A DNA stretch of 64,000 nucleotides from Paraphysomonas bandaiensis (GCA_965644295.1 CBFFRP010000069.1:248001-312000), one strand, 5' to 3'; shown: positions 3,128 through 37,760, numbered from the stretch's first letter. Made by a program: numbers and translations. The notes: generated from the letters alone by a model not told the origin.

Positions 3128-4629
3128 GAATGCGCCTGTTTTCACGAGAAACCAGCCTATTGATATAGTATAACTGTAAGGATATTTCTATGAAATGTGA
3201 TATTGGAAATATGCGTTTTGATTGACCACTTGGTTATCAGTATAAGGAAACATATAGCTGCCATCAAGAGTATAATGTAGCGTCTGACAAGCTATACTGT
3301 TGAAAGAAAGTCAATAGTTTTTTTACATTAATATCATAAATAATTCCCTTTTGTATTATGCGTCTTGGATACTTAATCTTTAATCTACAGTTACCAGTTA
3401 CAAGAGCATCAGCATTTTTAGTGTAACAACCAGCTATCTGGTATTGAGCTCACTATTGTATATATGCTTAAGTAAGTACATACTATATGTGCAACATAGG
3501 TGATTACTATTGCTATATTCCATATTGAGCTATATGATATATTATGACTATGACAACTCATGCTTATCATTGATATTTATATATCTATTTATATATCTAT
3601 TCGAAAGACAAAGAAAGACAGGATTACCAATAATGAATAATGAAGCATAATGAAGATAATTGTTGATGATATGTATACATTATTATATATTATATATATT
3701 GATGTTTAAGGCTAGAGAAGATTACTGGAGAATTCCGGGTTTGTTATTTACGCTGATAGATGTGTATTACCAGATTATCCAGTTGTAATTTGTGTATTTT
3801 ATTAGGTACTTATTACTTATTGTTTATTGAACTGTGTTTGGAAGTACGTATACAAGGCTTTAACTACAATGAGAAGAGCTATTGGTAATGTATATGGATG
3901 GAGGTCATTTCTTTAACCCTTCCTTTGGCATGGGAATCATAAGTATATATATTGATTATTGATAATAAGATGCAATTTATTTATATTGGAAGTTGCCAGT
4001 AGTTGTATATACTGTATCGTTACCTGTCACTATATTATATATGATATTATTATTATGAAAGAACCTAAGGTTGAGGGCAGGACTCTGCTAGAACCTATCT
4101 TGTTGGTAAAGTTATTGTTAGGATATTGTTAGAAGGATACGACCCTTCTCGTGACACAGGACACAAATCATGAAGATCAATTCAGAGCTGTGGTTTAGTT
4201 GAGCCAGGGTCAGAGACACTGGTATCACATTTGCGGAATCAGCTACCACTGGCTTTCGACTAACAATAGCCGTATAACGCAAAGTTTTTAATCCATGGCT
4301 GATCTACGGTAGATATCAAAGTCAGCGTGTTGTCATACTGGTATAATAAGTGTGCTAAATATTGCTGTAGGTGCACCCAATAATAAGAGCAATAGGTTGT
4401 GTAGTATTAAATATAATTCCCTAAACAAAGTCGGACTCGCACCTTTTTGTGGTGTTCTGGGGGATAAGTACCGGAGAGATTCTCTCTGGGAAACTAACGT
4501 GAGCCGTAAACATAGTCAGCAGATATTCTTCTGCCCAGTCATAGCCTAATGCTTGTGTGATACAAGGGACACCAATAAGTGTCCCTGACGAATAAACAGG
4601 CATCCGGGACAGGGCCCACCTGAAGGGTA

Positions 4630-4879
4630 ACCGGGGTATTGGGCTGCCTGCTGATGTCAAGCATCCGGGATGTTCACCTTAAGAACTCAGAGCGGAAGTG
4701 GTCGCACGTTGGTGCTTGCGGCGACGCACAAGCAGCTTCCGTAGCGTTAAATAGTAGGATAAAAAAAGTGTGTACTGATTAGTTACGGGTAGAGGTCTAA
4801 CTAGTTTGTCTAGCATTCATCTAGCTACTAAGTTGGTGCAGGCTTTTAACGCCTATTGCTAATAATAAGACTTTCAATA
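4630..4879 (-). mobile_element. Truncated arm of a long-TIR MITE family (same family as 27768-28230 and 33601-34091)
   Basis: Reverse complement matches gtgaatgtctgattattagcaataggc...gctacgaaagctgcttgtgcgtcgccgcaagcaccaa..gcaaccactt...cccggatgcttgac. Confidence 0.75.
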
Positions 4880-5379
4880 TATATTATAATTAATTTACTC
4901 ATTCGTGAGGTATCAAATAATCGATAAGATTCGGAAGCACGAACTGTTTAGCACTCATTGCATATTGATAAGGCGGCGTGTATCAACAAGCATATCCATA
5001 TCCATTGGCAAAAAATACAAACAGCAGAACGTCATAGTAGCCGATATGATTTTTATAGCGGCAATCAATATTTTCTAGCACGATGCATCTTGTGTACACT
5101 GCAAGTACTTTTGCGACTGACATTGCTGTGTTAGAAAAGATCAACTTCATACAATTCATCGATCGTAGGAGTAACGATAATACTTTCCTGAGATTAAGAA
5201 TATGAGGGAATGCCACCAACAGATATTACAAATGAAAGCCCACCTGTGCTTGTATTTTTCTGAGTCTTTGCCACGTTTGTTCACGTAAAAGAAGACATTG
5301 CGCAAGCCTACTTCAACTGTTAATAATGACACATTAAAGTATTGCTACTAACTTTTCAACAGTCTCAAATATCACCATA

Positions 5380-8300
5380 TCACAGTGCCACATCTCTTCC
5401 AAGTAACCACGCGCCCTGCATTGCCACTTTGAGCTTACATATAGCACATGTCATATATTCGTACCTCTCATAGTCCTTTAGCAAAGGTGCAGGCGGAGGC
5501 CCAACATGCTGCGAAATGCTGAGACTAACCTTGTTACCATCCTCACGGCGATTAGCTTCGGGTGAAAGGCGTGCGTCGCATTTTATGTCGCTTGAACAAG
5601 TTCTCGATGAAGTTCTTGAAAAAGAACGCATCGATGGCTGTGGGTTCTTGTCACTGTCAATCGACTTCTCGCTCTGCAGCACATCCAAAACGACGCTTGC
5701 GTTGTTGTCACATTTTCCAGACATACTCCGCTCATCTTCTTGGATCAAAGTAGTGGGGCTCAACATGCTGTACACAAATTGCTCTGCCTCAGATATATGT
5801 CTCTCCTGGCTGCTTGAGAGGCGACATCGACTTATAAAACTATTCGTGCTGTTGGCACTCCCTTCACTGTCGCTACGAACGCGATCTTTAATATCGCCTT
5901 CTAACTCCACAGTACCCGTTGAATAATCAATGTCATCTTCACCCACTGACCGAAGCGATGCGACGAATGATGAAGAACACCCATCGACAGAGGACTTCGG
6001 GGTGTGTTGATACTCCTCCGAATTATTTCTACTACTCCGTAACAATGTTAGTATCGAAAACGCCTTTCTATTGAGCTTCTCGATTCGCGGTAACGGTGTG
6101 GATGTATAGGTGTGTGTGTCAGAGGGAGCAGCAGGAGGATTAGAAACGACTGCTCGCAGTGATTGCAAGTAATGTAAAATCTGAAGGAAATTTTCTCGGT
6201 CGGTAATACTTTTCTCGAGTTTCTTCTGTATGTCATTTCGATGTTGTCGTACCCCGTTCAGTTGCTCGCGAAGGAAATGAACGGAGGGTAAATCTGACTC
6301 AAAACGTCTATCTACAATGATGTTTTCGTCGCTGCCGCAAGCAATTCCACCACAGCTGAGCCGTGTACGTCCTCTATGCTGTCGTTTCAGAATATCCGTT
6401 GGTTCGGAGCCCCAACTCATACTGCACAGCGTAGTAGGAGTTGGAAGACTGCACACTGACGATCGCTTTCCCTCGTCAGACTCATCACATATCGTGTCAG
6501 CGGCAGTGGCAAGCCAGCAATCAGTCTGTGCGCTTTCGGATCGTAGTGGCGTTTCACTTGATGTGGGTGTCGTGAGGCTCACGCGGTTTATGACGCTCTG
6601 TTTCAACAATTCACAACCGGAACTAGTATGCGAGCTTGTTCTTCGATGACTGTGAATAGAGCTCGCAGGGGCGTCGCTATCTCCTCTGCCGCGGCGAGGA
6701 GGCCGGCATCCTGCCACAGCCCGAGTATCTACAGACAGTAGAGTGCTTGGAGTTGGAAGTGATCGTGGTTTGTCTTCAAAAGTATCCGGAAGTAGAGAAG
6801 GAGCAGGACTACCAATAAACACAGCGGATGACATATCCATTTCTACATCCGGTACGACTTCCATATTATGCTGAGATGTGTGCGCTACCGCAGACGAAGC
6901 CACAATTTTCATTGGCGCTGAACGCGAGGGCGATTCGTGGGAGGTATTGGACGAGCTGCGATTACTGGTTGGAGATTTGCTGTTTGAGAGATTTCGGTTC
7001 GGTGATGTAGTCGAAAACGAGGTCGAGGTTGATACAGTTCCACGATCTGGCGATGACAGCATTGAAAATACACCATATCCAGCTGTTGCACATGGTGTGT
7101 AATTGGTTGCAGGACAGACATAAGCTTCAGATGAAGCAGGCGTCAGAGGGCTTGAAACAAGATCTACTGAACGAGGGACTTCTGTACGTGGCGGTGAGTT
7201 TGTTACCATCGAAGATGATGGTGTGTCACCCACCACGGAATTTGAGTGCACAGTAGTACGTGTGGTTCCTTTCAATGAGAGCGCCAACAGTGACGGACGG
7301 CAGGACTGTACAGATGAGTCTGTTGAAACCAGCGATTCTGGTGCAGCACGATCAGTCGATCTCGTCACAGTTACTCCTTGAATATCCTCTTTGGCATCCA
7401 CGACATCCACATCATGATCTCTCTCATCATGATCGGAGCACACACTTATCCAGTCCTCACCAACAGCACCTGAACTACTTAACGACATTTGTGACAACTG
7501 CCCAGAAGCACTGGAAACGTTTTCTCTTTGAGCATAAATGGCAGCTTTGGCAACCCTTTGGGCCAGAGAACTACCACCACATGAGCCTCCTCCCCCAAAA
7601 AATGAACCAGGGGAATCTCCAGCAGCCGAGGCAGACCTCTCGGAGTAGTCAGGGTGATCTACCCTTGAAAAAATACTATCTGTACTATACCTCGAGGACT
7701 GCTGCTGCACAGGTGTAGAGCACTCTGCAAACCCATCACCATTGTCCAAGTAGATACATGGCGTCACGCCACCTAGCAGATTGTTGCTATGTGCAGATAG
7801 GGATGACGAATCATTGCTTGCCGAGCGATCACCATCTTTTTCTTCAACCACACGGCCCAGAGGACTCTCATAAGGTACGCCGAAATGCTTGCCAGTAGTT
7901 GGTATGCCGGCAAGCCTTTCGATGGGTGATGAAGTAGGTGCACTAAGTGCACTGTAGAGCCCCTTCGAAAGTGAGCCAGACAGCCCACCCGTTGCATCAT
8001 CCTCAGTGGTGTCTCGGTCTGTACCACAAGGTCCTAGGAAGCTATTGCCACTCATACTACTGCTTCTGCTTGTCATGGTTCCAGATATGGTCATTTGACT
8101 ACTGCGGCTGTACGTTAGCAGAGATTCAACTGACGTGAGACCAGAGTCCCAATCACTAAGGCGACTGTCGCTTGGCGCCGACGACTGCCGTTCACTCGCC
8201 TGTGGTGGGGTCGATGCTTTAACTCGTTCCGTGAACACATTACCTCCCGTAACAGCACTATCAGGGGGCAATGCAACACTTAGTGCGTCGAAAAATTGAT

Positions 8301-9624
8301 GGGCACTACTTCGGCCCCTACATGATTTAGATACACTCGAGCAGTTTAATTTCTGCGGGGAGGATGTGTCCACGGAATCTTCAAAAGAAAGCACAATGGG
8401 ATGAGTAGGAGGATTGCGGTGAGACACGCAGGAGGGAAGCGGACTATAGTCGTTCGCATCATCCTTCCCTCCGGAGCGAAAGTGTACCGTGAAGTATATG
8501 CGATCTCTTCCAGACTCGCGTTCTCTTTCAAGTGCATCTTTACCTGTCCCTTCTCTCCCACGAAGCATTGGAAAGAGCTTAAGGTGAGTATTAACCTACG
8601 TTAAAAAAGTTAATATAGATGCAAGAAATGATGTACGCGGCTTTAGGCATGTATATGTACTGACCTCTACTTTTCCTACACTCTCCAAAGCTATCACACG
8701 AGAGCGAGATTTGTGGCTCGTGAGATCCACATAACCCAAGTGTAAAGCGGCACCAGTGATACGTACACACACTTTCTTCCACACCTTTATCACAAAACCA
8801 TTATAGTAACGCATCTGACCATCGCCTGTGTATAAGACACGTTGACAAGCATTCTCGATTGCTTTCTTAATGCTGAGGGAAGACTGCGAGATACGCTCCA
8901 GGTCTTTGCGGCTCTCCCGCTCCTCTTCAACTGTCTCCCAGATTTTCATGCAGTAGCGGTGTTCCCTGTTGCGTAGTTCACGATTCATGCCCTTCAGGTT
9001 GCGGAGGGCAGCATCTTTTCGGCCCGAGTGCACCTCGAGATCTGTCTGGAATTTAGTCTCAGCTTCTCTAAGCCGCTCCATAAGAGATTGCAAATGAGTG
9101 ATACGCTGACTGTCCGTCCAATCCAAATAATCCTCGTATATCTCGCCCACACAATAGCTCGTGCCCCACAGAGTTGGTTGCATATCCTTATGCAACGGAG
9201 ACCACGCATACTTACTCACCCCAAATATAGTATTATCTGCACTATCATATGATCCCGATTTGGCACGACACACATGTGTATCATCCATCTTTGCTTGAAT
9301 ATATTTCTGATAATCAGCACTTCTTCGTAATAATTGTATAATTTTTTGATTCCCTCTTTCTAATGCAATATCAATAGGTGTTTTACCATAATTATTTCTC
9401 ATTAATCTTGCACCATATTTAATAATTTGTATCGTTTCATATTCAAGATTTAATGAGACAGCATGATGTAATAGAGTTTGCCCTCCCTTTAATTCAAAAT
9501 CAATGGCATATCCATGATTTAAAACAATTGATAATAAAGTTTTAAAATTATGTTTTGTTTCATTATTTTGATATGTATATAATGCAGATTCAAAAGTATC
9601 ATGTTGAATTCTATCTATTGACAT
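5380..9624 (-). CDS. Ankyrin repeat + coiled-coil + PH-like domain protein with a long Ser/Pro-rich region (~1390 aa; further 3' exons possible)
   Basis: ORF 8596-9624 (GQTLLHHAV, GKTPIDIA ankyrin motifs; KVWKKVCVRITGAALHL PH-like strands) joins ORF 5380-8568 in frame through a 69-nt phase-0 GT-AG intron at 8664-8596. Confidence 0.75.
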
Positions 9625-9631
9625 CTTAATA

Positions 9632-9740
9632 AGATGGAGATGGAGATGGAGTGTGTGAGAGAGAGAGAGAGAGAGGGAGGGAGAGATCTATGAGGTCATA
9701 GAGAGAGAGGGAGAGAGAGATGGAAGGGAAAGAGGGGGAT
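9632..9740. repeat. (GA)n / purine-rich simple repeat upstream of the ankyrin gene
   Basis: gagatg and gagaga runs directly visible. Confidence 0.85.
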
Positions 9741-9840
9741 TAGTTTAGTTCATTGAAATGGTTTGTAAATGAATATGATCCTTGAAACAACAGAGACAGA
9801 AATATATATGCATATATAACCATATTACTACACGCACGCA

Positions 9841-10107
9841 CATACATACATACATACATACATACATACATACATACATACATACATACATACATACATA
9901 CATACATACATACATACATACATACATACATACATACATACATACATACATACATACATACATACATACATACATACATACATACATACATACATTCATA
10001 CATACATACATACATACATACATACATACATACATACATACATACATACCATACATACATACATACATACATACATACATACATACATACATACATACAT
10101 ACATACA

Positions 10108-10141
<34 letters not shown>

Positions 10142-11133
10142 CATACATACATACATACATACATACATACATACATACATACATACATACATACATACAT
10201 ACATACATACATACATACATACATACATACATACATACATACATACATACATACATACATACATACATACATACATACATACATACATACATACATACAT
10301 ACATACATACATACATACATACATACATACATACATACATACATACATACATACATACATACATACATACATACATACATACATACATACATACATACAT
10401 ACATACATACATACATACATACATACATACATACATACATACATACATACATACATACATACATACATACATACATACATACATACATACATACATACAT
10501 ACATACATACATACATCATACATACATACATACATACATACATACATACATACATACATACATACATACATACATACATACATACATACATACATACATA
10601 CATACATACATACATACATACATACATACATACATACATACATACATACATACATACATACATACATACATACATACATACATACATACATACATACATA
10701 CATACATACATACATACATACATACATACATACATACATACATACATACATACATACATACATACATACATACATACATACATACATACATACATACATA
10801 CATACCTACATACATACATACATACCATACATACATACATACATACATACATACATACATACATACATACATACATACATACATACATACATACATACAT
10901 ACATACATACATACATACATACATACATACATACATACATACATACCTACATACATACATACATACATACATACATACATACATACATTCATACATACAT
11001 ACATACATACATACATACATACATACATACATACATACATACATACATACATACATACATACATACATACATACATACATACATACATACATACATACAT
11101 ACATACATACATACATACATACATACATACATA
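9841..11133. repeat. ~1.3-kb (CATA)n microsatellite
   Basis: About 320 near-perfect CATA units with rare variants. Confidence 0.99.
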
Positions 11134-12042
11134 CTGCTCTGCCTGTGACCGCTGCCTCCTCCAGCACCCCGTTCAGGTAGACCACGTACATCTTGTTCCT
11201 CCGGTAGAATGTTAAATCGCTGTCAGGTAGGTGAACAGTGAATGACTCTCCTTGTCTGTACGTTACATCATACATGTCTTCCACATCAGCCTGACATAGG
11301 ACGCTTGCCCTTAGCTCATCAGCTGTCTTGCAGGTGAAGAATTGGTCCAGCTCTCCCACATTCGGCAGTTCCGGCGCGTGTCCCGATAGTCCCGCTACAG
11401 TGCATCCTCTGGACGCCGGTCTTACATTGTTCAGCAATCTTGGGTGCACTACTGAGACATCCGCCTGGTTGTGAAGCAACACTCCATACCACTGGAATGG
11501 CTCGCTCCCTGACGTGAAAGCATTCAACATTGTTGTTGTGCAATGCTTGTTCTCTGTTTCCTGACTGTTGTCGGGGCATTCTTTCAGTCTGTGGCCTGGT
11601 TCACCGCAGCCCCAACATATGAGCTGCCTCTTCTTTTGAGCACGTGCTCGATTTGCTCACGAATGCAGCTCCACCGCCCGTTCTCAACGCTCTCTTAGGT
11701 GTCAAATATGTCGGTGCCTTTGTATATATTTCGTTGACATGCTTAGGTGCTGCTGGTGTTCCCATTGTTGGATCATTGAGATAGCTAGTCTTGAATTCTC
11801 CGTATCTTGTGTCATCTAACCCTTCGAAGAAGTCCATCGTAATATCTTCTTCATTCATTTCTGCATTATTCATGTCTTTGTATGCCTCCAATAGGTGATC
11901 AATCGCTCCTTGTAAGTAACTATGCTTTCATACGCTCCTTGTTTGGCATCTTTGTACCTTTTTCTTGCTTCCACGCGTACCACTGTGCTTACGCTGGAGT
12001 TAGTAGACACCTTGTGCGTTTGTTTGATAGCTAGCCATAGCT
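11134..12042 (-). pseudogene. Ty1/Copia gag-protease fragment (frameshifted)
   Basis: KQGAYESIVTYKER gag motif, CWGCGEPGHRLKEC zinc knuckle and VLLHNQADVSVVHPRLL (degenerate LLDNQ-type protease motif), split across frames. Confidence 0.75.
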
Positions 12043-12044
12043 GT

Positions 12045-12567
12045 TAGATGAGTACGAGCTTATGAACAAGACCAAGGATCCACTACTGCTATGGCTAGCT
12101 ATCAAACACACGCTCAAGGTGTCTACTAACTTCAGCGTAAGCACAGTGGTACGCGTGGAAGCAAGAAAAAAGTACAAAGATGCTAAACAAGGAGCGTATG
12201 AAAGCATAGTTACTTACAAGGAGCGATTGATCACCTATTGGAGGCATACCAAGACATGAATAACGCAGAAATGAATGAAGAAGATATTACGATGGACTTC
12301 TTCGAAGGGTTAGATGACACAAGATACGGAGAATTCAAGACTAGCTATCTCAATGATCCAACAATGGGAGCACCAGCAGCACCTAAGCATGTCAACGAAA
12401 TAATATATACAAAGGCACCAAAGAGAGCGTTGAGAACGGGCGGTGGAGCTGCATTCGTGAGCAAATCGAGCACGTGCTCAGAAAGAGGCAGCTCATATGT
12501 TGGGGCTGCGGTGAACCAGGCCACAGACTGAAAGAATGCCCCGACAGCAGTCAGGAAACAGAGAACA
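12045..12567 (+). pseudogene. Inverted duplicate of the same Copia gag fragment
   Basis: ORFs 12062-12259 and 12238-12531 are nearly identical to the minus-strand ORF 11601-11891 region; reverse-complement match to ~11548-12041. Confidence 0.85.
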
Positions 12568-13370
12568 TTGTGTTTGATAGAGTACTGGAAATTCTTATGA
12601 TAGTATATACTTAGGTTTGAGTTATGGCGCAGTAAAATTTAAAAAGTGTTCATAACGCTGATTTATATCTTACTTCCGAGGATTCTACTTCAAGCAAGAT
12701 ATTCTTAGCTCTTCTTGTGAATATTCAACATATGCGAACTGCTAATAGCTTATGATAGTATTGATGGAGTGACAGTTGCTGGGACATCTGCTGAGCAAAT
12801 TGACACTTGCTTGTGCCATATGTGTACTATGTCATTGTGATACGGAAATCCGTAATATTTGGATATGGTATATAGATATATGATATATCCAGTACCCCGT
12901 CTATTAATAGCTTTATTTGGACGCTCTGTATATTTTTTCTCATGATGCGAGGAGCTGAGGACTTCAGTGCGTGTTTATGGAGATAGAGCACTCCCAACAG
13001 GATTGATCTCAGTTTCGAGTTGGTCATTCGACAATTCCACGGCTACTAGTATACTAAAACTACATGCATTTATACACTCTGCTATTTGTGCATGAAGTAC
13101 CTCATTGTTTTAAAACTTTCAATAATCTCGGTGTATATATTAATTTACTACTAGTATTGATGCTTCTGATATTGTGTCTTGTAAAAAGCAAACACCCCAT
13201 GAACACTGTCAAACCGAACCTGTATGTAGTAAGTGAATCACTCAGCGGAAAAATCGGAACATAAAAACAACATATATTACTACAAGTCCGGCTATGGACC
13301 ATGCACTTTGAAAATTGGCCTAGTCAGAATTCGAAATATATACAACAATAAAGCGTTAAATACAGAGCAA

Positions 13371-16300
13371 CTATAAAACGGATTTCGTCAAGCGCCGAGG
13401 CCGACTAGAACTTTCACTAACGACAACATCAGATGCAGTTTGAGTTGTCTTGAGTCCCATTAAGCTTTCAACATTAATATCTTTAGCTCGTCTCACACTT
13501 TCACTATGTGCAGCCACATTGACGAGAGTACGACGATAATGTTCGCCGGCTCCGACAGTAGATGTTTCCTCGCTGTACTTTTCAGCCACAATAGTCTTCG
13601 GTTTTCCTAAGTGCAAAGGGGGAGCAGAAGCTGTGATGTCTTTTAATACGTCGAAAGTTTCCACTTCATCTTTCTTCTTCAATGAAATCGGGATTTTCTG
13701 TAGATCTGCACGAGTAACGATTGACTGTTTCCGTTGCTTACCAAATCCATATTGAGCAGCCATATGCCTTCGTCGCGCCATAAGTTTAGTCTGTTCAATC
13801 GTTTCTTCGTCTTGCTTCTCCACCAAGACAGACACACTTGTGCAGCCTGGTGCCCTGTCGATTCCATCCGGATACTTGTTGGATACCTGTCAAAAATATA
13901 TCACGATTCACGACGAGCGATGATACGTGCCAATAATCAAATCACCTGATGCTTCCATTCTTTCCAGAACTTTGGAGGCGGCAACGCCTCCATAGCCTCT
14001 TTCATTCCAAAGACTTTGTCATAGATTAAGGCGTTTCGTTTATGCTATAACAGCTTTAACTAACCAACAAGTAAAAGAAATGTACATTGCAACCTGTTTA
14101 TATTGTGGCTGCTGGTGCGCCTCTTTTATTGCCTTTATGGTATTCTTACGATCTCGACCAATCTATGCACATAATGTGAACTACAACACAAAAATATTAC
14201 ACGTTATCTTACATGGACGATAGAATACGGATTCGTTCCAGGTGGGTCGGCTGGGGTAAGCACTTTTAAATACATAAGGTGATTTCCACTGTCTCTGTGC
14301 CTTTGTGTTGCACTCCGTATGGGATGAGATCCCACATAACTACCGATATGAGGAATTCCAATTGTCTTACCCAATTCACTGCTTGGTTTAATGGGTGTAG
14401 ACACCACCACGGGTTTCGGGGATGCCTCCTCCTTTGCAGGTGGAGAAGCTGGGAGCGGCTTCATCGCGGTTGGAGTAAGTCCATCAAAAAAGGAAGTTCG
14501 AAAGCTCTTGACTTTCGGGGAGATATCTTCGTGTATATCATCTTCCACAATACGAGCTAAGGTGTCCACAACTAATGCTGGCCGCGCTCGCATTGTAGAC
14601 TGCTTACGAGCTGGCATCCAGTCTTCATCAAACAAGTCATCTTCGCTGTCACACGAGTCACCCATTGAAAGAGCGTAAGAATCGGTACTGTAGGCATGCA
14701 TATCTTTTGAGGCGCTGCGTGATAGAGATAAATGTGATCCTGATGGAGTCTTTGGAGATACAGCTGGACGAAAAGGATTCGCAGCTAGGGGGGATCCCTC
14801 TCTAACTCCTCTAGAAGGAAGCCGCTTCCCATATGCGCCTAGGTCAGACTGCAAGTCCTCTACCATCTTTAGTGCAATGGAGTTACGGCGAACTCTTCTG
14901 GTAGATTCCCGAATCGATTTCTCATAAGCCTCCTGATTACGGGCGTAAAAGTCTCTGTCGTCATCTTCCCCGCCCCGCACACCAAACGCCTCGAATGCTC
15001 CCTCTTCCTCTATATGGGAGCCTATACGTGTTATCATGCGGCTTCTTACAAACTCCTCGACTTCCTTCTCGTTTGCCTTGTTCAGTTTCAGACTGATAGC
15101 TTGAAGCGTCTCGTTGTCAAAGAGCACGTTAAGCATACATTCCATACCGTTCTCTTCTATTTCATTCGCATCCATGTTGAGTGCATGTAAGATTTTGTTA
15201 CATCTTAGCGCTGGGGCAATGGTAATTACTCCTTTATCTGTTATCTTATTTTTCGAAATATCCAGATACTCCAGATTCGACATATCAGAATATAAGAGTT
15301 CTCTCAGAGCCGGGCAACACTGATCAGTGAGCCGGTTATCTTTAATGTTAAGTGTGCGAAGACTACTGAGTGCGACAGCACCAAACAAAACAGCTGCACC
15401 TTTATCCCCAATGCGTTGCTGACCAAGGACAAGGCTGTGAAGACCATCTCCCGCTGGGTTACATGAGAGTACTTCAGCAAGCATTTGGGCACCGTGATCA
15501 GTTACCCGAGGGTGGGTATCGTGTTCTACACCGATTGAATATTAGTCTAATACATTAGCAGAAACACTCCTACCTGTGGTTTCCCATTTCAGCTCAGGCC
15601 ATTTATTACTTACATTAAGCTCCTTGATCCTGGAATTCTTTTTTAGCAGGTCACACAAATGATATATACCCATGTCGGATATGAAATTGCCACCAAGCCA
15701 TATCGTATGCAGTTCTGGGTGGCGTTTGACAGCTCGTGATAGCATTTTAACTCCCTCATCGGTGATAACATTGTTATGTAGCATGAGGTGTTGAAGGACT
15801 GTATTACGTGCAAGATTATCACACACAATCTTCAGGAGACTATCGTCGATATGCTCACTACTCAAGCGAAGACGCACAAGGCCACCATCGTTGCGTTTCA
15901 GACGCTTGCCTATGTCTATTATGCGGTAACGCCGTTCAGATGTGTGTGTCGGCCACACGCTTTTCAATTGCCGAGCCTGACAGAGAAAATTGTCAGACAT
16001 CTATTTAGAGGACTTGTCATACACTTACCTTTGATACATAAGGTACCTGTTGTAACATGTAGCTGTTGATCTGTTCGTCGAATGGATCTCTGTTCATTCT
16101 CAATCAAACTACTGAGACATTAAAAACACACACAGTACTTACACAAAGTCATCAGCATTTTCAACCTTTTTCTTGTATCTGGCTAAGGCATGTAGAGGAC
16201 TGCTAGTAAGAACTTCATCAACATATGAATTTAATATATCATCTGTTCCAGTTCCTCCATCACTGACTGATGATTTACTTTTACGTAATGAAGAATTCAT

Positions 16301-17305: not shown

Positions 17306-19237
17306 ATGAGTCATATTTCTCATGGTAGTGAAGAGATATATGAAACTTTTGTTGAAGATAAATCTCCAGAAGATTATTCGGTATGTATGTATATATATAT
17401 ATGTCTATGTATGTATGTATGTGTGTGTGTTGTATATATATAGGTATGTTGCATGTGTTTGCTATATGTATGTATATGTGTGTATATGTATGTGTATATA
17501 TATATATGTATGTGGATGTTATATGTATGTATATATATATATGTATAGATGTAAGTGTGTGTGTATGTATGTATATATGATATATTTATTTAATAATCTT
17601 CTCATATGATACGTTAACGAATACATACATTACAGACTGTGAAAGTTGAAACAAAGGAATCAGTTAATATTGAGTCTACTCATATTGTTCCAAGTACAGC
17701 ATTTGAATACTTTCATGGCAAGATATATGAACATAATCAAGATCATGGTATGATTTTTCTTTGATTTTATCTTGTAGTGTGGTGTATTTTATGAATATAA
17801 TGTAGGTATGAGGCATATATATTCTCTCGCTGATTCGGTGGAACGGAGAGTGGAATCTCCTCTACAGCGATTAGCTAGGTTACGTGCGGAAGCAGAGGAC
17901 CTACGAAGCGACTTAGCTGCCATGGAAAAAGAGCAAGAAGCAAGTAAAGCAGCCCCCGAGGTATCACTTTGGAGTACTCTCCAGTCAGAGACTAAAGGGT
18001 TATTGAGTGGGCTTGAGGGATTAGCAACCAAAGCGGAACAATTACAGCAGCGCCAGATGAACAGCAAATCTGCTGCTGGCGAAGCTATTGAAGCTGCAGT
18101 CGAGAAGCTGTCTCTATCTGAGAAGTCACAGACTGGCAACGGAGTGGATTCTGACGGTGTGGTGAGTAAAGGTAGTGTGACGGACCTGGTAGCATTGGAG
18201 CGGAGGGTCGACGCCCTGGAGACGCTGTTGGGATCTGCCTCAAATGCACTGGACATGGAAGGTCGGGTTGTATATTATGCATTTAACTTGCGTAGTTGCT
18301 GGAACTGACATGTATCCTATTACATGTATTATTTGAGACTTATTCTGGTTGGATGTTTTTGCAGGCGTCTTAGGAGTGTCTGCTTCTGGTCGAACATATC
18401 CCCTTGTCGACAGTCTTGCCAAGTGAGCCCTTCTATATATCATCAGATATTTGGTTTGCTTGACGTATTATGGACACTGTTTTGCAGTTTGGAGCGACGT
18501 GTGAATATGTTGGATGAGGCGGCTATGGAGGGAATCAAAAACAAGGCTGTAGCTCTAAGATCTGAGCTAGAAGAAGTCCAGAAGGATCGAATTAGACAAG
18601 GTATGTGAACGAGAGTTTTGATTATTACCTTTGTGTGCATGCTTTGTTGTGTAGCTATCCATATATATGATTTTGCCATAGTTCTGAATATTAAATCCTA
18701 AATTAGGGGGTAGTGCTCAGCGAGTCATTGACTCCGCTCGCAAGGTCGAAGCTATATATGACCGCGTTAACCAAGTAAAATCCGTGTCGGAGGACCTACC
18801 GGCGCTGGTACTCAGGTAAACATTAGCTTACCTGTATTTTCACGACTAGATGAAACTTTTGTATTAACAATAGGCTAAAAACATTGGAGTCGATTCATCA
18901 TGAGGTACCTATTTTGAAAACCTCATTTCTGCACTCGTAATCGTATTGATCAGGCTGCCTCGTTCACTTCCCGCCTGAGTGATCTAGAAAACTCTACAGT
19001 AAACTTAGAGGCGGAGATGGATGCTAACGCCAGTGTTCTGAAGGCTCTGAAGGAGGTTCGTGTGATAATGAATCCTTGCTAGCCTTATTACTGTGTACAG
19101 AGTCTAGCGGAAAACATGGAGACAATGAAGGGAAATATTGAGCAGGTAGAAATCATGTGATGGTAGATTGTCGACGATCGAGTGTTAACGTTTTTTGACA
19201 GATTGATAGTAGAATCAACCGATTGACAGAGTCTTAA
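17306..19237 (+). CDS. DCTN2: Dynactin subunit 2 (p50/dynamitin), multi-exon
   Basis: EEIYET N-terminus, ESPLQRLARLRAEAEDL, ALERRVDALETLLG, DLPALVLRLKTLESIHHEAASF and C-terminal ENMETMKGNIEQIDSRI; TAA at 19235-19237. Confidence 0.85.
17382..17636. repeat. TATG/TA-rich microsatellite first intron of DCTN2
   Basis: gtatgt donor followed by degenerate (TATG)/(TA)/(TG) repeats. Confidence 0.8.
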
Positions 19238-30374: not shown

Positions 30375-30597
30375 TATATACAACCATCCCCTTAAGATAT
30401 TCCTACATAAATTATGTCATATCCATATCTTTTTTTTTTAATTAGATCCACAAATTATTCACTTCATCACACTTTCTTCTTATATATATACCTATACACA
30501 CCGCACACAGAAGTATCTGATATGATCTTATAACAATCATCTTCATATGATCGAAGTGTATCATCATAATTATACTTTAAACATCTCTATATAATCA

Positions 30598-30621
30598 ATA
30601 CATACACATACACATACACAT

Positions 30622-30684
<63 letters not shown>

Positions 30685-30703
30685 TATACACATACACATA
30701 CAT
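30598..30703. repeat. (CATACA)-type microsatellite immediately 5' of the dehydratase ATG
   Basis: Tandem catacacata/catataca units ending ~5 nt before ATG 30708. Confidence 0.9.
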
Positions 30704-30707
30704 TAAA

Positions 30708-33300
30708 ATGTTTCTATCAATATCTTTTATTACTCTAATTTTCTATATATTTCAATATGTATCTGCTGATATATCATTTATTAAAAAGGTATGAACTATG
30801 AGTTATATATAGGATGATATCCCTTATAAAGCTATCTGTCTTCTTTTATACAGATTGTTGCAACTAATTTAGCTGATGGATACTGGGTAGAAGCTATGGA
30901 TGTAGATATGGATGGATGGATTGATTTGGTAACATCTGGTCTTGCTGTTGGTGATGTTTATTGGTATAGAAACCCTCATAATGAACATGATGAGTGGGTT
31001 CGACAACATATTATTAAGGTATACTATATATTTATGTATTGTATTTGTCTTATACACTTCTATGTACAGCTTAGCAAACCAGTTGCTATTGACCATGCAG
31101 ATATTGACAACGACGGTTTTCCGGATATCGTTATTTCGCATAATTACGGAAGTTGTATGTATAACTGTGCTCCAACTGACGGCAAGGTTTCTTGGCTTCG
31201 AAATCCTGGAAATTCTGAAAGAGGATGGGAGGCTAGGCTCATTGGAAACATTATGGCCGCCCATCGTGTAAAAATTGGAAAATTTACACAGAATACTAAC
31301 ATGGAGGTCATGGTTTTGCCTGTAGTGGGTGTGGAAGGTAGAATTATTGTTAATCGTCACTGTTTGTTGTTAATACGCTTGGATGTTTCCAGGAGTTCAT
31401 GAGCCTGTAAAAGTTCAAATATACAATTTACCCTCGCAAGAAGACATTCTGAAAAATGACCTCTGGACCATACAACCTGTCGACAACACTACATTTCGCA
31501 TTATTCACGGTGTAGTGGTTGGAAAGTTCGGGTCTCGCAGGGGGTCTGATTTGGATTCTGTGTTGCTGGCTAGCGAAGAAGGGGTGACTTGGTTGTATTA
31601 TGGAGGCAAGGAAATTGGATGGAAGCACGAGAACTTGAATAAAGGCGAGCTGTCGGAGTATTCGTTGACTAAATTCAAAGGCTCTGGTAATGTTGATGCT
31701 TGTCGAATTGGTGATGATGCCTTCGCCTTAATTCCCACGGCGGAACCATTTCACGGCAACACGATCGCTGCATACAGGAAGGACACGACAAATTCTTTGA
31801 CCGATGTACGGTGGGATAGACAGGTGTTGGAGGTGATGGGTCACCCGAATAGTGCGGGTGAGGGCGAGGCTCACCATGTGGTAAGCTCCCCATCCCTGTT
31901 ATTCATTATATCACACCACATTCGGATTAAGAATGACTAATATATGGGTTAGGTGTGTGCTGATTTTGATGATGATGGAAACGATGAATTTCTAGTTGCA
32001 CTGCGAGGCCCTATGCCCTACCAAGGGATTCTACACTTCACTCCTCTTCCGGTAGAAGAAGGAGTCCTGCCCAAATACAATTACCAGAAGCAATCCGTGT
32101 CAACGAATTCGGCCGCAAGAATTGCCCTTGCAGACTTCAACAACGATGGCAAGTTGGATTTTGCCACCACTGGATACTACACGCCAGGATACTTTTTGTG
32201 CGACAATCCTCAAGTCTTGGTGTACTACAACAACATTGAACAGCAAGGAAAGGGCTTGTCTGAAAGTTCTGTCCCTGCAGCCACTTCCACTTGCCTAGGC
32301 GAGGAAGCACTCCCCCCTGCTGAGAGAGTAGCGAAGAAGTCCGTATATTTTCCGGAAGGGGCTGTGAAGGTCGGCATTCAGCCCACAGGATGGGTTAATG
32401 ACGACTTTCCACTGCTGGGTAACGACCTCTATTCCTATGGGCAGATTATGGACGAGGTATATATCTCTTTCTTAGTGTTGCAATAACAGGATGTATGTTT
32501 TGTAGGTTGCTTTGGCGGGTTTTGAGGGCGGGTCTGTGGGACATAAGTACCCCACTGATCGTGCCGTTCTGAAGAAGGAGTTAGGTCTGCGAAACCTTGT
32601 CGTCTCTGAGCCTTGGACCAGCACTTATTTTTCTGTCCCCGGTATGGCCAACAAAACTACCGATGGGTTTGTCACATCGATGGATTTCATTCGAGATATG
32701 GGAGGAAAGTCCCTTGTAGTAGCTGAGTTGGGGCATGCCGTACACCAACTGCCCTTGCCCCTTTTTGCCAACAAGCCGAATTTCACGGAGGCGCAGTGGC
32801 AAGATGTGGCGGCAGGTTTGAACAGTCTTGGCCAACTGGCGAAGAACGCGGGTATGCAATTGCTCTATCATCACCATTTGGGGTCAGGTGTCATGTACAG
32901 AGATGAAATTGATAAATTGATGTCTCTTACCGATCCAGAGTTAGTGTACTTGCTTGTTGACACTGGACACGCTTTTGCAGCCAACGTTGATCCACTGGAT
33001 CTCATTCGCACATACAAGTCCAGAGTTCGCGAAGTTCACTTGAAGAACGTTCGATACCCCAGATTGCTCAAGGTTGTGCAGGACGGACTTACTTTCTACG
33101 AAGGCATTTTGGAAGGCATGTTCACCGTTCCTGGGGACGACAGCGGGGTGGTTGATTTCGAACCTATTCTTGGTGAGTTATCTGACTTGAAGTACTCTGG
33201 ATGGCTGGTCGTGGAAGCTGAGCAAGACCCAAGCAAAGGTGATCCTTTGCAATATGCCCAGACAGCGCGAGCGTACCTCAAACAGTTTGATGGACTGTAA
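30708..33300 (+). CDS. Signal-peptide protein: AUDH-type beta-propeller fused to an IolE-like (myo-inosose-2 dehydratase) TIM barrel, 766 aa
   Basis: Exons 30708-30788, 30854-31018, 31070-31337, 31393-31880, 31953-32456 and 32506-33300 (all GT-AG, 2301 nt in frame). Propeller motifs: LADGYWVEA, GKVSWLRNPG, AHRVKIGKFT, AEPFHGNTIAAY, HHVVCADFDDDGNDEFLVA, SAARIALADF, GYFLCDNP. IolE motifs: GWVNDDFP, YHHHLG, DTGH, VHLKN, FTVPGD, GWLVVEAEQDP. Confidence 0.88.
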
Positions 33301-33600
33301 GCTGCTCACCATTGCTTGGTCTCCGTTGTTGCAGCAAATTTTGAAAACGTTTATTAACTTGTTAACGATATGAGCAATTTATTTTATTGCATACTGGAAA
33401 AATATACACCAACAAATATCTATTCTGGTAATAAAGTGTGACGACTGGGTAGTACTAGAGACTGGGTTATCAAATTGACATAATATGATGAATGGCAAAT
33501 ACTTGATAAACTGAATGTAGCTCTCACTCAATGTTTTTTAAGAATTATAATCAATCTCACTTATCATTCATTGTCATTCGCTAAATTCATGCTACCTCAG

Positions 33601-34091
33601 TAGTGAATATCTGATTATTAGCAATATATATAGGCGTGTGAGATTCAGAACTAATATATCAAAACAATTTAAATAACTTGTGCTTAACTCTGATGTCCTA
33701 CTATTTGGCGCTACGAAAGCTGCTTGTACGTCCCCGCAAGCACCAAGGTGCAACCACTTTTGCTCTCTGTCCTTAAGATGAATAGCCCGGATGCTTGACT
33801 TCAGCAGGGAGCCCAGGCCCCCGACTCCTCCTCAACGGCATCCGGGCTACTCACGCACTTACTTAAGGACTTAGAAAACCTGAAGTTAGCAGATGCCAGG
33901 TATATTAACATTCTGCCTGCTTACTGTGTTTGCTTTGAATGATGGAGCAAAAGTGCTTGCGGGGATGCACAAGCGACTTCAGTAGTGTTAAATAGTAGGA
34001 TATCAGAGCTAATCAAAAGTTAGTTAAATTGTTTTACTACATTTGTTCTGACTCTTACACGCCTATATTGCTAATGATCAGACACTTACTA
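33601..34091. mobile_element. Complete non-autonomous long-TIR element (MITE), ~490 bp
   Basis: Left tagtgaatatctgattattagcaata..taggcgtgtgagattcagaac and right gttctgactcttacacgcctatattgctaatgatcagacacttacta form ~140-bp imperfect inverted arms; TA at both ends. Confidence 0.75.
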
Positions 34092-35794
34092 TGTAAAGTC
34101 AATGCTGCGATTGAGTATGTTGGTAATTTTAAGCAAAAAACAAGACAATCTTAACAGTTAGAGTGAGAAGGTGATAAGGTCACATGGAGTGTATGCTGGA
34201 ACGAAGAGCAGCAGATTAAGAAAAGAGTGAGCGACAGATATATGGACTAGATAGAGGTACTCGACCAAGGAAGTTCCTTTAGTGTGAGACATGTGGGTTT
34301 AAACACCATTATATGGGCCGTTTTTGTCTATTTAGAGAACGGAAGTAAGAGCAAGTTTAGCTGGTATAAACCATGGAAATTTGCTAAGTTCGAGGCAAAG
34401 ACTTTGGAGAAGATATTAGAGGCCATAAAATAAAATAGTAAGGCATAGCAAAAACTTGGAGATGTGGTGAAAAGAGAATTCGTACAACTGGTAGTCGATG
34501 CAAAAGAGGAACAAGCGAAGAGTGTGGGGAAGATCTGAGATGAGAATAGATGAGATGTAGATGGTAGTCATGATCAGATTTTAGAAGATACGAGTATTAA
34601 GGTAAGATATAGGGTTGGAGTGTACCGGGACTATCCATAGGACGTAACGGACGTTTATGTACGGATAGTATTACAACGGTATACGTAGATATTCTGTAGG
34701 ATGAGGAGTAGGTATTTCTATATGTGATTATTGCTGGAAGTAGAAGTCTAGCTATTTATGGCTGGGAAACCACTTCTAACTAGAATTAGCGAAGAAGGGG
34801 ATGTACTATTAGAGGTAGAAAGATATGGATTTTTAGATATATATAGCAAAGTTAAGAAGTTGAGGAGTTACGAGGTTAACAGTAAGAAAAGTAAATTTAA
34901 GTGTTGAGTGTTGTAAAAAGGTAATTACTACCCACATCACCTCTGTACACATGGGCAGGGATGATAAGACCAGCAATATTTAGTCATGATGGCGAGGCTT
35001 AATCACCCGTAGTCGTTCCATTACAATAATATTATAAATAATTTATTTATTGCAAAACGCATCGAAAACTCAACATAAATCGAAATTTCACCAGGTTTGG
35101 TCATCACATTGACATGATGTTAATAACAAATTTTTCATATATAACTTTGTAATTATCTACAAACCGCAAGAGATAAAAATTTAGTTGTTATTTTATTTCT
35201 TGAATTTTGCTGTTTGAGAGCAATTAAAGCTGTAGTTCAAAGATATTTGAATTGTGGCTGTTATTAGTAGAATACAGAAGTGAGAACTAATGTCATAATA
35301 GCATTCGTAGTAGTAAACCTGAAATATATTGACCGTATAAGATCGTGATATCTAAGATTGCGTGGAAATGATTGGTAGTTGAGACAATATGAATTTAGCA
35401 ATTGACAATGAATAACAAGTGATTTTAATCATAACTTTTTGTATGTTACTATATGCTTCTAATCATAGAGTGATATTGTTTAGTTTTGTCATTTTTAACA
35501 TAATTGAACATGCTGACTTATATTTGCTTGTACTGTAATTATAATGAAAATAATTCTACAACATACAACAAACTACTAACTATCCAATTGTTAATTAATA
35601 ATTAATTTGTTGAATGTTATAATGTTGACAAAATTGTCCAGAGAATTGTTTTGTAAACAAATATATTCTCTACGATTCTTTCATAATCGTCTTGTGGACT
35701 CTAGGACATATTAAATGGTTACGAAAACAAGAATGTTAACGACTTTCAGTATCAAAATCTAGCTGAAGGTAGCCCGGGCAAATTGACTTGCTTC

Positions 35795-37602
35795 CTACTG
35801 CAAAATACTATCACGGCACGCCTTGATTGCTAAAGCGGAGGCAGTCAGAGTCGGGTTGGCCGCCATTCCCTTATTGATATTACCATTCCCACCGACCCAC
35901 AAGTTAGTAGTACCCCAGACTTGGGAGTTGCAATCGGCCACACTGGTTTCCGGATCCTTCCCAACGCGAGTGACACCGTGGATGTGAAGCACCAACCCGG
36001 GAGCCATGAACTGCGGGTTCGAACCTGGCAAGAAACCACCAATGGATCTGGTGGCGCGGACCATGTCGAGCATCATATCGTGATGCTGTTGCGCATTAGC
36101 CACACTATCGCGAACATTAAAAGTTGGCTGTGGCATACCGAATATGTCCACTTCGGTGTCACTGAAAGTAACTTCGTTCGTTACCAACTGTTCGCCCAAG
36201 CCAAACCAGCGAAAATCAAGGACGAGTCGAGAGTCTACATTGGGGGCAGTGTCTCCGTAGGCGAACGCATCGCGATGGATCTGGCAGTGCCATGGTCTGC
36301 CTTCGCTAACAGGAATGTAGCAATTGGGATCGACGTCAGAGTACGGAATGGGGATGTCATTAGGAAAGTGCTCAAGATGGTCACGCACTGCCTCATGAAA
36401 TCGAGGATCCGTTCTCACTTTTTCGAGAATATTTTGGTTGTAAACCACTTGGCAGAAAGCCATGGGCTGTTCCACCAAATACTTGCCCAGGGCCGGCGAA
36501 CGAAAATTCGACTTGTGGAGGAGCTGTGCCCCCAACACTGTGCCGCCACACACAATATACTTCTTTGCTCGGACTATGGTTTGCGTCTTGTGGAGGAGGT
36601 TTTCGATGATGGCATATGACACGTTGCCATCTGCTCCCTTCACTAGCTCACGACAGATGTGTTGCTCCTTAATGACGAAGCGACGTCCTTCCATTCCTCG
36701 CGCCGGTGTGAAGTCTGCATCGTCGATAGAAAAGTTGTCATCCCTTCCCCACTCTCCCAAGACAGTGTTTGCAGAACCCCAGCGAAAAAAGGTCTTATTG
36801 TTTCCTCTCCTTTCCACTGACAGCGGCAAGTTCTGGGGATTGTATGGTGCTTGAAGCTCTGGGTACTCCTGTAAAGGAAAAATGTAAATATACATATTGC
36901 AAAAAATACTATAAAAAACACAAGAAAACAAGAAAATCTACAATTGCAAGTTTTATGTACCTGCTGTAGCGCCTCTCGAACCACTGTAGTTCGAATGGAT
37001 TGGTTGAAGGCAGCTTGGGTGCGACCGTAGAGGGCTTCAGCCTCATCATACAATTCATTCCATTCCGCCGGCTCTAAAATATCGGACTGCTCGATAGTAG
37101 GGTGGGCACGCGGAATCGCGCAGGTCCAATGAGTTGCCATGCCACCCACAGCGTAAGTTGCTGCCGCACCTGGCAAATTTACCGCTGGGTTTTGCTCATT
37201 ATTTTGGTGCAAAGCGCCAGGATAACCTGCAGGTGGTTTGTAGCTAAACGGATCCAATGTTGGAACAGTCGATGTATCCACCGGAACCGAAAGGGTGTGG
37301 AGATGACCCCTTATAACATTTGCAAAGGGGTTTACATCTTTTTGATAAACCGCTGCGTTCTTCAGATGCACCCCAGGTCGAATACTCTGAGCGCTTCCAA
37401 TGTCAACCATCAACACATTGTAATTATGTTTCTGATCATCTAATATCTTTCGAGCAAATGTTGCACCTACAGGTCCTGATCCCACGATCAAGACATCAAC
37501 ATCAATTTCTTGAATAATAGTAGGGGACACTTCTTTTGGGCAAGGATCATAATATCTACATTCATCATCATATGCTGATGATTCAGATTTCATTGATTTC
37601 AT
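35795..37602 (-). CDS. Pyranose 2-oxidase (GMC oxidoreductase, CAZy AA3_4-like), 571 aa
   Basis: Exons 37602-36961 and 36868-35795 (92-nt GT-AG intron). DVLIVGSGPVG FAD motif, GVHLKN, VGGMATHWTC flavinylation motif, PWHCQIHRDAFAYG substrate loop, SRLVLDFRWFG, FGMPQPTF, PGLVLH (catalytic His) and ANPTLT (catalytic Asn). Confidence 0.93.
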
Positions 37603-37760
37603 TGGATATAGATGGGATTAGAGATGGGAATAATGATGGGATTCTAATTGCTGCTTTGCAAGACATTGTGTAGCTTGAAGATCCACATATCTTGAAGATC
37701 CACACATATGTTTGAAGAGAAATACAATATCTTGAAGAGACTAAACTGAATATCAATGGA

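Follow-up and report, generated by a model that had tools for sequence, protein, structure and literature searches.

A linked pyranose 2-oxidase gene and AUDH propeller-IolE-type fusion gene in the chrysophyte Paraphysomonas bandaiensis, most probably derived from a bacterial three-gene operon

The window analysed here, a stretch of 64,000 nucleotides from Paraphysomonas bandaiensis (GCA_965644295.1, CBFFRP010000069.1:248001-312000), carries two linked genes, one encoding an aldos-2-ulose dehydratase (AUDH)-type beta-propeller fused to an IolE-type TIM barrel (gene A) and the other a pyranose 2-oxidase (gene B). Judging from sequence comparisons, the pair is most probably neither an invention of protists nor a cluster of the fungal type; it matches a three-gene operon of bacteria and would have been acquired horizontally. 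We hold it to be very probable that a bacterial oxidase/dehydratase operon was taken up and rebuilt as two spliced genes, and consider it somewhat better than an even bet that the two proteins, by analogy with known enzymes, would first oxidise and then dehydrate a sugar; to the combination of acquired-operon origin and oxidise-then-dehydrate function we assign a probability of about 0.7. An earlier note on this DNA (hereafter the original prediction) had described a keto-sugar pathway cluster in an apparently non-fungal eukaryote; what it observed is confirmed, what it made of the observation is partly supported, and what is new here is the linkage of the module in bacteria, together with a propeller-IolE fusion that has no counterpart among the clusters of the propeller family.

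The two proteins and the bacterial three-gene module

Translation of the window between 30.7 and 37.6 kb confirmed both genes. Gene B (35795..37602, minus strand) starts with an ATG at 37602 and consists of two exons (37602-36961 and 36868-35795) separated by a single GT-AG intron of 92 nt, its open frame encoding 571 amino acids. The best matches in the PDB are pyranose oxidases (9fl2, 4mif and 1tt0), the exons reaching 4e-69 and 6e-41 against 9fl2, which is followed by the enzymes from Phanerochaete and Trametes. A GMC_oxred_C domain was detected with Pfam, and the two exons, scored separately against TIGR02462, gave 357.8 and 173.6 bits over model positions 1-185 and 193-543, the cut-off of 544.9 referring to the whole protein. 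These PDB matches and exon scores bear out the pyranose 2-oxidase identity given in the original prediction.

The motifs expected of such an enzyme are present in gene B. The FAD-binding GxGxxG motif (VLIVGSGPVGA, aa 37-47) aligns with 9fl2 and 1tt0, the THWT motif with the covalent flavin His (GGMATHWTCAIPR) aligns with the corresponding segment (GGMGIHWTCATPR) of OPOx, the enzyme of Oscillatoria princeps, and the segments LVLHIHGVTRVG, AANPTLT and CQIHRDAFAYG align with matching segments of 4mif and 3bg7/1tt0; an LH..G.TR.G motif is also carried. Among these segments are those that we take to hold the catalytic His/Asn pair and the gating loop. OPOx itself is described (PMC11650716) as containing covalent FAD and oxidising glucose with a KM of 48 uM. 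The intact catalytic and flavinylation motifs support the prediction that the gene B oxidase is competent. No hydrophobic N-terminal signal comparable to that of gene A was seen in gene B.

Gene A (30708..33300, plus strand) encodes 766 amino acids from an ATG at 30708, in a spliced frame that stays open through six exons (30708-30788, 30854-31018, 31070-31337, 31393-31880, 31953-32456 and 32506-33300); all five introns are GT-AG and 49-72 nt long. The region 30854..32234 (about aa 28-428), split by introns 2-4, encodes a seven-bladed FG-GAP beta-propeller of the AUDH type: Pfam places FG-GAP repeats and AUDH_beta_propeller across exons 2-5, with PF22301 matching two exons at E-values of 6e-25 and 1e-17 (88.4 and 64.8 bits, cut-off 27), and the sole PDB match of exon 4 is aldos-2-ulose dehydratase (4a7k, 7e-13). 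Aligned with stand-alone bacterial propellers and cupin-type AUDHs, the gene A propeller keeps 25 of 25 invariant and 26 of 26 near-invariant residues of the family, including the invariant H147, H292 and H332 and the near-invariant H210 and E234. The AUDH cupin (isomerase) domain PF18637, present in cupin-type relatives, P0253 and P0269 among them, found no match in gene A, and because this domain is absent gene A is not a full AUDH.

The second domain of gene A, a TIM barrel of the xylose-isomerase fold resembling myo-inosose-2 dehydratase (IolE), occupies 32340..33297 and is split by intron 5 (32457-32505). Exon 6 matches Pfam AP_endonuc_2 (PF01261) with an E-value of 4.5e-20 and IolE (3cny) in the PDB with 6e-58, and the alignment with 3cny shows identical YHHH, DTGH, VH.K and VVEAEQD motifs; from the fold, we assume the HHH, DTGH, VH.K and VVEAEQD motifs to supply metal ligands. 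Against the IolE equivalog model TIGR04379, exon 6 by itself covers model positions 33-288 with a score of 270.9 bits; exon 5 holds positions 1-32, and the cut-off of 290 is set for the whole protein. The original prediction of a protein combining an AUDH propeller with an IolE-type domain is thus upheld by PF22301, 4a7k, 3cny and TIGR04379.

Two further segments of gene A lie outside these domains. Exon 1 (30708..30788) encodes a hydrophobic N-terminal extension (MFLSISFITLIFYIFQYVSA..., mean Kyte-Doolittle value of 2.34 over aa 1-15); the first 20 residues are strongly hydrophobic and end in VSA, which suggests a signal peptide or signal anchor, and the last ~7 residues of the exon align with the start of bacterial propeller proteins. 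Between propeller and barrel, a linker of ~35 aa (IEQQGKGLSESSVPAATSTCLGEEALPPAERVAKK, 32235..32339) has no bacterial counterpart.

A search with the oxidase exon returned 492 proteins at E <= 1e-20, and among the best 120 all named ones are bacterial pyranose oxidases, with 47-55% identity. The best match (P0001) lies on a 5.3-kb metagenomic contig (L001) in which genes for a propeller (417 aa), a TIM protein (299 aa), the oxidase (552 aa) and a GDE-type glycosidase follow one another on the same strand with gaps of 80 nt; in Rapidithrix thailandica an oxidase, a TIM gene, two glycosidases and a propeller gene form one block. The gene A propeller and TIM barrel are 57% and 56% identical, respectively, to bacterial operon members, and for each of the three domains the closest homologues by sequence identity (50-57%) come from bacteria. 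Moreover, gene A is collinear with the adjacent propeller and TIM genes of L001: exons 1-5 align with the propeller protein up to its last residues (48-66% identity), and after ~35 unmatched residues, at the place of an 80-nt intergenic spacer in L001, the alignment resumes at residue 2 of the TIM protein (44-50% identity). This collinearity indicates that the second domain of gene A corresponds to the neighbouring TIM gene of the operon, fused in frame. The original prediction had been right that the second domain differs from that of fungal AUDH, there being no cupin and an IolE-type TIM barrel instead, and had missed where it came from, namely the bacterial operon's own IolE-like gene joined to the propeller gene.

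To what extent the three genes travel together in bacteria was assessed by searching the 10-kb flanks of 80 species-representative oxidase loci for partner genes, with counts that are lower bounds because some contigs are incomplete. An IolE-like TIM gene lies immediately downstream of the oxidase in 52 loci, and in 43 a stand-alone AUDH-like propeller gene is also nearby. Loci with partners belong to Actinomycetota, Chloroflexota, Bacteroidota and Dormiibacterota, and most of the 28 loci that lack partners group in a small number of coherent clades. The commonest gene orders are oxidase-TIM-propeller and propeller-oxidase-TIM, the order in L001 being propeller, TIM, oxidase. A GH15/TREH_N trehalase-like gene occurs in 40 of the 80 loci and a bestrophin-like gene in 13, and the trehalase-like neighbour hints at a supply of glucose from trehalose or another alpha-glucoside. 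No iol genes were found beside the bacterial IolE-like genes, whose neighbours are the oxidase, propeller, GH15/TREH_N, bestrophin-like and GDE genes. Loci such as L091, L092 and L093 are arranged likewise, the module often being followed by TREH_N plus GH15 and bestrophin-like genes, and in some cases by a gene for an aldose 1-epimerase or for a glycosidase of the GDE/MGH1 type.

The AUDH-type propeller family comprises 84 representative clusters among 1.84 billion representative proteins, and no propeller-TIM fusion was found among these 84. Ten long members were scanned; seven combine propeller and cupin, one of them also being fused to an oxidase, and three have N-terminal extensions. Two members, P0248 and P0255, carry an N-terminal region of ~300 aa with weak plastocyanin/amicyanin-like (cupredoxin) matches and neither a cupin nor a TIM partner. 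The oxidase-fused member, P0251, is a frame of 1,387 aa (contig L095, 176-4339) in which a pyranose oxidase (TIGR02462, 542.7 bits) is joined to the propeller and cupin domains of AUDH. It is a natural fusion of both enzymes of the cortalcerone pathway; L095, 4,380 nt in length, holds no gene besides it.

It could be argued that the adjacency of genes A and B is a relic of co-transfer or mere chance and that their products work independently, the oxidase as a source of H2O2 and the IolE-type domain as a true myo-inosose-2 dehydratase of inositol breakdown. The TIM barrel does score as an IolE equivalog (270.9 bits for exon 6, and 359.8 bits for its L001 partner), a signal or anchor is predicted in gene A only, and the genes, 2.5 kb apart, occupy different strands and give rise to separate transcripts. 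However, the host genome yielded no gene of the IolB/KduI family, the bacterial IolE-like gene has no iol neighbours and directly follows the oxidase in the 52 loci mentioned above, the IolE-like domain of gene A is joined to a propeller of the AUDH type, for which no substrates other than pyranose oxidase products are known, and a fusion of oxidase and AUDH occurs naturally in P0251. Since the usual inositol gene context is missing, the gene A barrel is not a demonstrated IolE, and we regard independent functions as rather unlikely. Coupled oxidation and dehydration, by comparison, finds support in the conserved linkage of the three domains in bacteria and in the P0251 fusion; the linked oxidise-then-dehydrate module of the original prediction gains from both, and the presence of a signal or anchor in gene A only cuts mildly against simple coupling.

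Transcription, splicing and genomic setting

Transcript-like contigs from three runs (X9, X10 and X11) of one near-identical strain, with ~98-99% identity, were compared with the window over 31650-37640. The contigs skip exactly 31881-31952, 32457-32505 and 36869-36960, all GT..AG on the gene strand; these gaps coincide with the predicted introns 4 and 5 of gene A and the one intron of gene B. Spliced contigs measure 2520 and 2658 nt for gene A and 1784 and 1970 nt for gene B. Window base 31650 lies at position 812 in X10, which corresponds to 771 nt of spliced exons 1-4 plus a 40-nt leader, and at 830 in X9 (59-nt leader), and from these offsets introns 1-3 of gene A are removed as well; the offset of 885 in X11 is also compatible with one retained intron. 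Both genes are thus transcribed and correctly spliced. The depth of gene B relative to gene A is 4.9-7.8 in the three runs, a contig depth ratio that cannot rank expression. In addition, a 622-nt piece of gene B was found in a marine metatranscriptome, and sequence of the locus is present in runs filed under three organism labels and from several studies, as well as in some marine metagenomes.

Two differences between the strains were noted. The gene B contig of run X9 departs from the genome 21 nt upstream of the ATG (window 37623) with 29 unmatched letters, which may point to an alternative 5' exon or to divergence between the strains, and the related strain has a 13-nt insertion in the 3' untranslated region of gene A (window 33326).

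The host genome assembly (G000; 62.6 Mb, 669 contigs) contains each of the three domains in single copy. Every residue of its actin agrees with the MMETSP1103 protein assigned to the genus Paraphysomonas (taxid 36769); its cytosolic HSP90 matches an MMETSP transcript without differences and shares 85-87% identity with those of Paraphysomonas imperforata, Ectocarpus and Ochromonas. No light-harvesting protein (LHC) genes were found in G000, and their absence fits a colourless, phagotrophic chrysophyte. The non-fungal eukaryotic host of the original prediction is accordingly Paraphysomonas (Chrysophyceae), as the actin identity indicates, and a fungal host or a fungal-type AUDH was rejected on this identity and on the missing cupin domain.

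Given that the best matches of all three domains are bacterial, bacterial contamination or mis-assembly had to be considered. The two genes have, however, six GT-AG introns, for three of which transcripts directly demonstrate removal, and the stretch recurs in runs of three organism labels and several studies. Coding GC of the pair is 46-50%, within a range of 45-53% for host genes, compared with 60% for the bacterial contig L001; the introns have 23-38% GC and exon 1 of gene A 18.5%. Within a single contig of 312 kb or more, retroelements and eukaryotic genes lie on both sides of the pair; those flanking it in the window include leucine-rich repeat, ankyrin, cyclin and zinc-knuckle (gag-like) reading frames. 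With spliced transcripts and eukaryotic flanks, contamination or mis-assembly was rejected, and the chance left to it is practically negligible.

The two genes are convergent, tail-to-tail, with 2,494 bp between their facing stop codons, and the original description of two intact, intron-bearing genes 2.5 kb apart agrees with the open frames, the GT-AG introns and the spliced transcripts. The spacer (33301..35794; 2,494 bp) is AT-rich (35% GC) and contains the 3' untranslated regions and a foldback repeat resembling a miniature inverted-repeat transposable element (33628-34068), whose inverted arms of 116 nt are 83% complementary and surround 209 nt. This repeat is dispersed: a unit of ~190 nt recurs on many contigs with 85-90% identity, over 2,600 candidates came up at first look across the genome, and in the transcript-like runs the element reaches a very high summed depth (~1e5). 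No Rfam match to a structured RNA was found in the spacer. Remnants of GH15, GDE, bestrophin-like, GH63 or aldose epimerase genes were looked for in the window and none were found; the sole GH15-like signal in the genome is weak and lies on a different contig.

A long (ACATAC)n-type microsatellite (window 30596-30705) abuts the ATG of gene A and seems to be the leader or core promoter region, because the 5' ends deduced for the transcripts (40-59 nt leader) fall within it. Farther away, an open frame on the plus strand (window 17808-18308) is coiled-coil-like and possibly encodes the dynactin subunit named in the original prediction. Elsewhere in the assembly, contig C130 contains at 1061-14146 six tubulin-family genes arranged head-to-tail with a period of ~2,491 bp, identical copies of which are also present on several other contigs.

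Phylogenetic placement and probable acquisition of the block

Phylogenetic trees were unrooted, with midpoint rooting only, and were built from sets that comprised no fungal oxidase sequences. In a concatenated three-protein tree of the 43 taxa having all three proteins, the protist is sister to L001 (SH-aLRT support of 90), and the two fall inside sets that include Bacteroidota (97) and Rubrobacteraceae and Dehalococcoidia (100). The propeller tree also places gene A as sister to L001 (85); the pair lies inside the bacterial stand-alone propellers (95), at a clear distance from AUDHs that carry a cupin. The TIM barrel has a long branch and no resolved placement. Transfer from bacteria to a eukaryote is the economical direction, because the module is found in at least four bacterial phyla and otherwise in one protist genus and three orphan contigs.

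Several observations weigh against an acquired operon with a coupled function. The oxidase tree groups gene B with L003 and the oxidase domain of P0251 (99), rows that are affected by long branches and odd composition, and an approximately unbiased (AU) test rejects gene B and L001 as an exclusive pair (p = 0.0006). L003 (P0002) is a 2,061-nt contig with a single gene, presumably from a Tara Oceans RNA run; P0348, which also belongs to this clade, likewise stands on a single-gene contig. As the propeller of P0251 is not close to that of gene A, part of the oxidase's history may have been distinct from that of gene A, or the block may have entered eukaryotes before this genus arose. No single bacterial phylum is picked out as donor by the trees, L001 itself is a metagenomic contig, and the GH15/TREH_N, bestrophin-like and GDE partners of the bacterial loci do not occur in the window. 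Expression is evidenced by contigs assembled from three runs, all of one related strain, and the MMETSP runs contain almost none of the locus sequence. As to function, the chemistry of the propeller and the IolE-like part is argued by analogy only, and with a predicted signal or anchor in gene A and none in gene B the two enzymes may reside in different compartments.

The clade of gene B with the single-gene contigs L003, P0348 and P0251 bears in particular on the possibility of an old eukaryotic or fungal origin, by vertical descent with wide loss or by transfer from a fungus or protist, bacteria then being recipients or distant kin. Such an origin is compatible with unrooted trees, and the C-terminal half of fungal oxidases scores nearly as well against gene B as the cyanobacterial enzyme does. 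Yet the three-gene module extends across at least four bacterial phyla, named eukaryotic relatives are lacking among the best 120 matches of either oxidase search, the propeller family amounts to 84 clusters in which the propeller-TIM fusion does not occur, and the gene A propeller sits among stand-alone bacterial ones rather than with the cupin-type (fungal-type) AUDHs. Gene B also lacks the insertions of the fungal enzymes. A eukaryotic origin is for these reasons quite improbable.

For the acquired operon, which remains our preferred explanation, the following course of events is suggested. An ancestral Paraphysomonas, colourless and bacterivorous, probably acquired the block from a bacterium in which the genes were ordered propeller, TIM, oxidase. 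The first two reading frames would then have fused through the linker of ~35 aa, an AT-rich first exon would have contributed the hydrophobic N-terminus, and six spliceosomal introns would have been gained after the transfer, while base composition drifted to host values. The oxidase gene would have ended up on the opposite strand, across the spacer that now holds the repeat element.

To our knowledge, few cases are known of several linked genes of a bacterial operon occurring together, and expressed, in a eukaryotic nucleus. A bacterivorous marine flagellate as host fits the idea that eating bacteria favours gene uptake, and frame fusion, intron gain, compositional drift and the recruitment of an N-terminal exon, all putative steps of domestication, can be followed at one locus.

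Proposed chemistry and comparison with known systems

Pyranose oxidases yield 2-keto-glucose or 1,5-anhydrofructose, and these are the compounds that the AUDH propeller dehydrates; IolE, for its part, dehydrates 2-keto-myo-inositol, the carbocyclic analogue of 2-keto-glucose, to a 1,2-dione. It is reasonable to suppose that the gene B enzyme would use O2 to oxidise C2 of a pyranose, producing H2O2 and a 2-keto sugar, with D-glucose (as for OPOx) or 1,5-anhydroglucitol as likely substrates. The gene A protein would then dehydrate the keto sugar, the propeller carrying out a beta-elimination as in fungal AUDH and the IolE-type barrel standing in for the AUDH cupin in a second dehydration or a tautomerisation. 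The substrate of the barrel is thus likely to be a 2-keto pyranose rather than an inosose, and the expected product would be an enone, a diketone or a pyrone of the cortalcerone or ascopyrone type. That the propeller is paired here with an IolE barrel and not with a cupin points to a second, uncharacterised way of carrying out this chemistry, in which the product may be new.

Oxidation might instead take place at C3, in a glycoside 3-oxidase and sugar-lyase system (C-glycoside cleavage by CarA/CarBC or elimination from 3-keto-glycosides) in which the TIM barrel would remove the aglycone. Such systems also pair a pyranose-oxidase-like GMC enzyme with TIM barrels of the xylose-isomerase fold, the gene A barrel has weak matches to the sugar phosphate isomerase-like 8tcd/8tcs and the hydratase 8ro4 (1e-7 to 1e-4), and glycoside hydrolases occur near some of the bacterial operons. 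Gene B, however, matches 9fl2 at 4e-69 compared with 1e-20 and 5e-19 for 7dve and 7qf8, which stand for the C-glycoside and glycoside 3-oxidases, besides matching the pyranose_ox equivalog, the TIM barrel matches IolE at 6e-58 and lyase-type barrels at 1e-7, and no small subunit resembling CarC or DgpB was seen in the bacterial operons examined. We therefore judge oxidation at C3 to be very improbable.

A broader suggestion can be put forward tentatively, and with more doubt than confidence: a whole bacterial pathway may have been captured as one block and rebuilt as two genes, and the module, widespread in bacteria and often accompanied by the GH15 trehalase-like gene, would be the physiological setting in which bacterial pyranose oxidases act. 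From glucose it would make a dehydrated, reactive keto sugar, which may be a novel pyrone with antimicrobial action, together with H2O2, and the protist may use these in its food vacuole or in secretions against prey or competitors. The chemical defence, prey killing and new product of the original prediction are speculative.

In white-rot fungi, glucose is converted via glucosone to cortalcerone, and 1,5-anhydrofructose via ascopyrone M to microthecin. The Paraphysomonas pair resembles this pathway in that its oxidase belongs to the same family and shares the flavinylation His, the catalytic His/Asn and the gating-loop motifs, in that its propeller belongs to PF22301 with all invariant residues kept, and in the logic of C2 oxidation followed by dehydration. 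Unlike fungal AUDH, gene A has neither cupin nor lectin domains and continues after the propeller into the IolE-type TIM barrel; unlike the fungal oxidases, gene B is of the compact bacterial type, and the host is a chrysophyte whose propeller falls among stand-alone bacterial ones.

The closest solved or characterised relatives of gene B are the bacterial pyranose oxidases, namely OPOx of Oscillatoria princeps (9FL2), KaPOx and ScPOx. In papers on these enzymes a transfer of the oxidase from bacteria to fungi is proposed and lignin-related, peroxidase-linked roles are discussed; term searches of several of them gave no mention of an operon, a gene cluster or neighbouring genes, a dehydratase appearing only where fungal AUDH is cited in a reference list. 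Full-text searches of the literature, with subscription journals outside their coverage, likewise found nothing that links pyranose oxidase with IolE or trehalase or reports a POx/IolE/AUDH operon, and neither the protist cluster nor the bacterial module was described in what they covered; the fungal dehydratase is named alongside a bacterial oxidase in a single paper, as a citation. Compared with the single bacterial oxidases published, the oxidase here is part of a conserved three-gene module and, in a eukaryote, has an intron. The role of the bacterial enzyme is debated, with lignin and peroxidase partners under consideration, and the linkage in 52 of 80 loci offers an alternative, a pathway of keto-sugar dehydration.

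With IolE (3cny, TIGR04379) the gene A barrel shares fold and family, the HHH, DTGH and EAEQD motifs being aligned and the identity, judged by eye, being ~45-50%. It differs from IolE in lacking the company of iolG, iolD, iolB and iolC, in its linkage to a pyranose oxidase and in its fusion to a propeller.

An example of the acquisition of a whole operon by a eukaryote is the siderophore operon of Wickerhamiella/Starmerella yeasts. As in that case, linked bacterial genes lie adjacent in the nucleus and are expressed as eukaryotic genes; unlike it, the Paraphysomonas locus represents another pathway in a phagotrophic stramenopile host, with two of the genes fused and with introns and a hydrophobic N-terminal exon.

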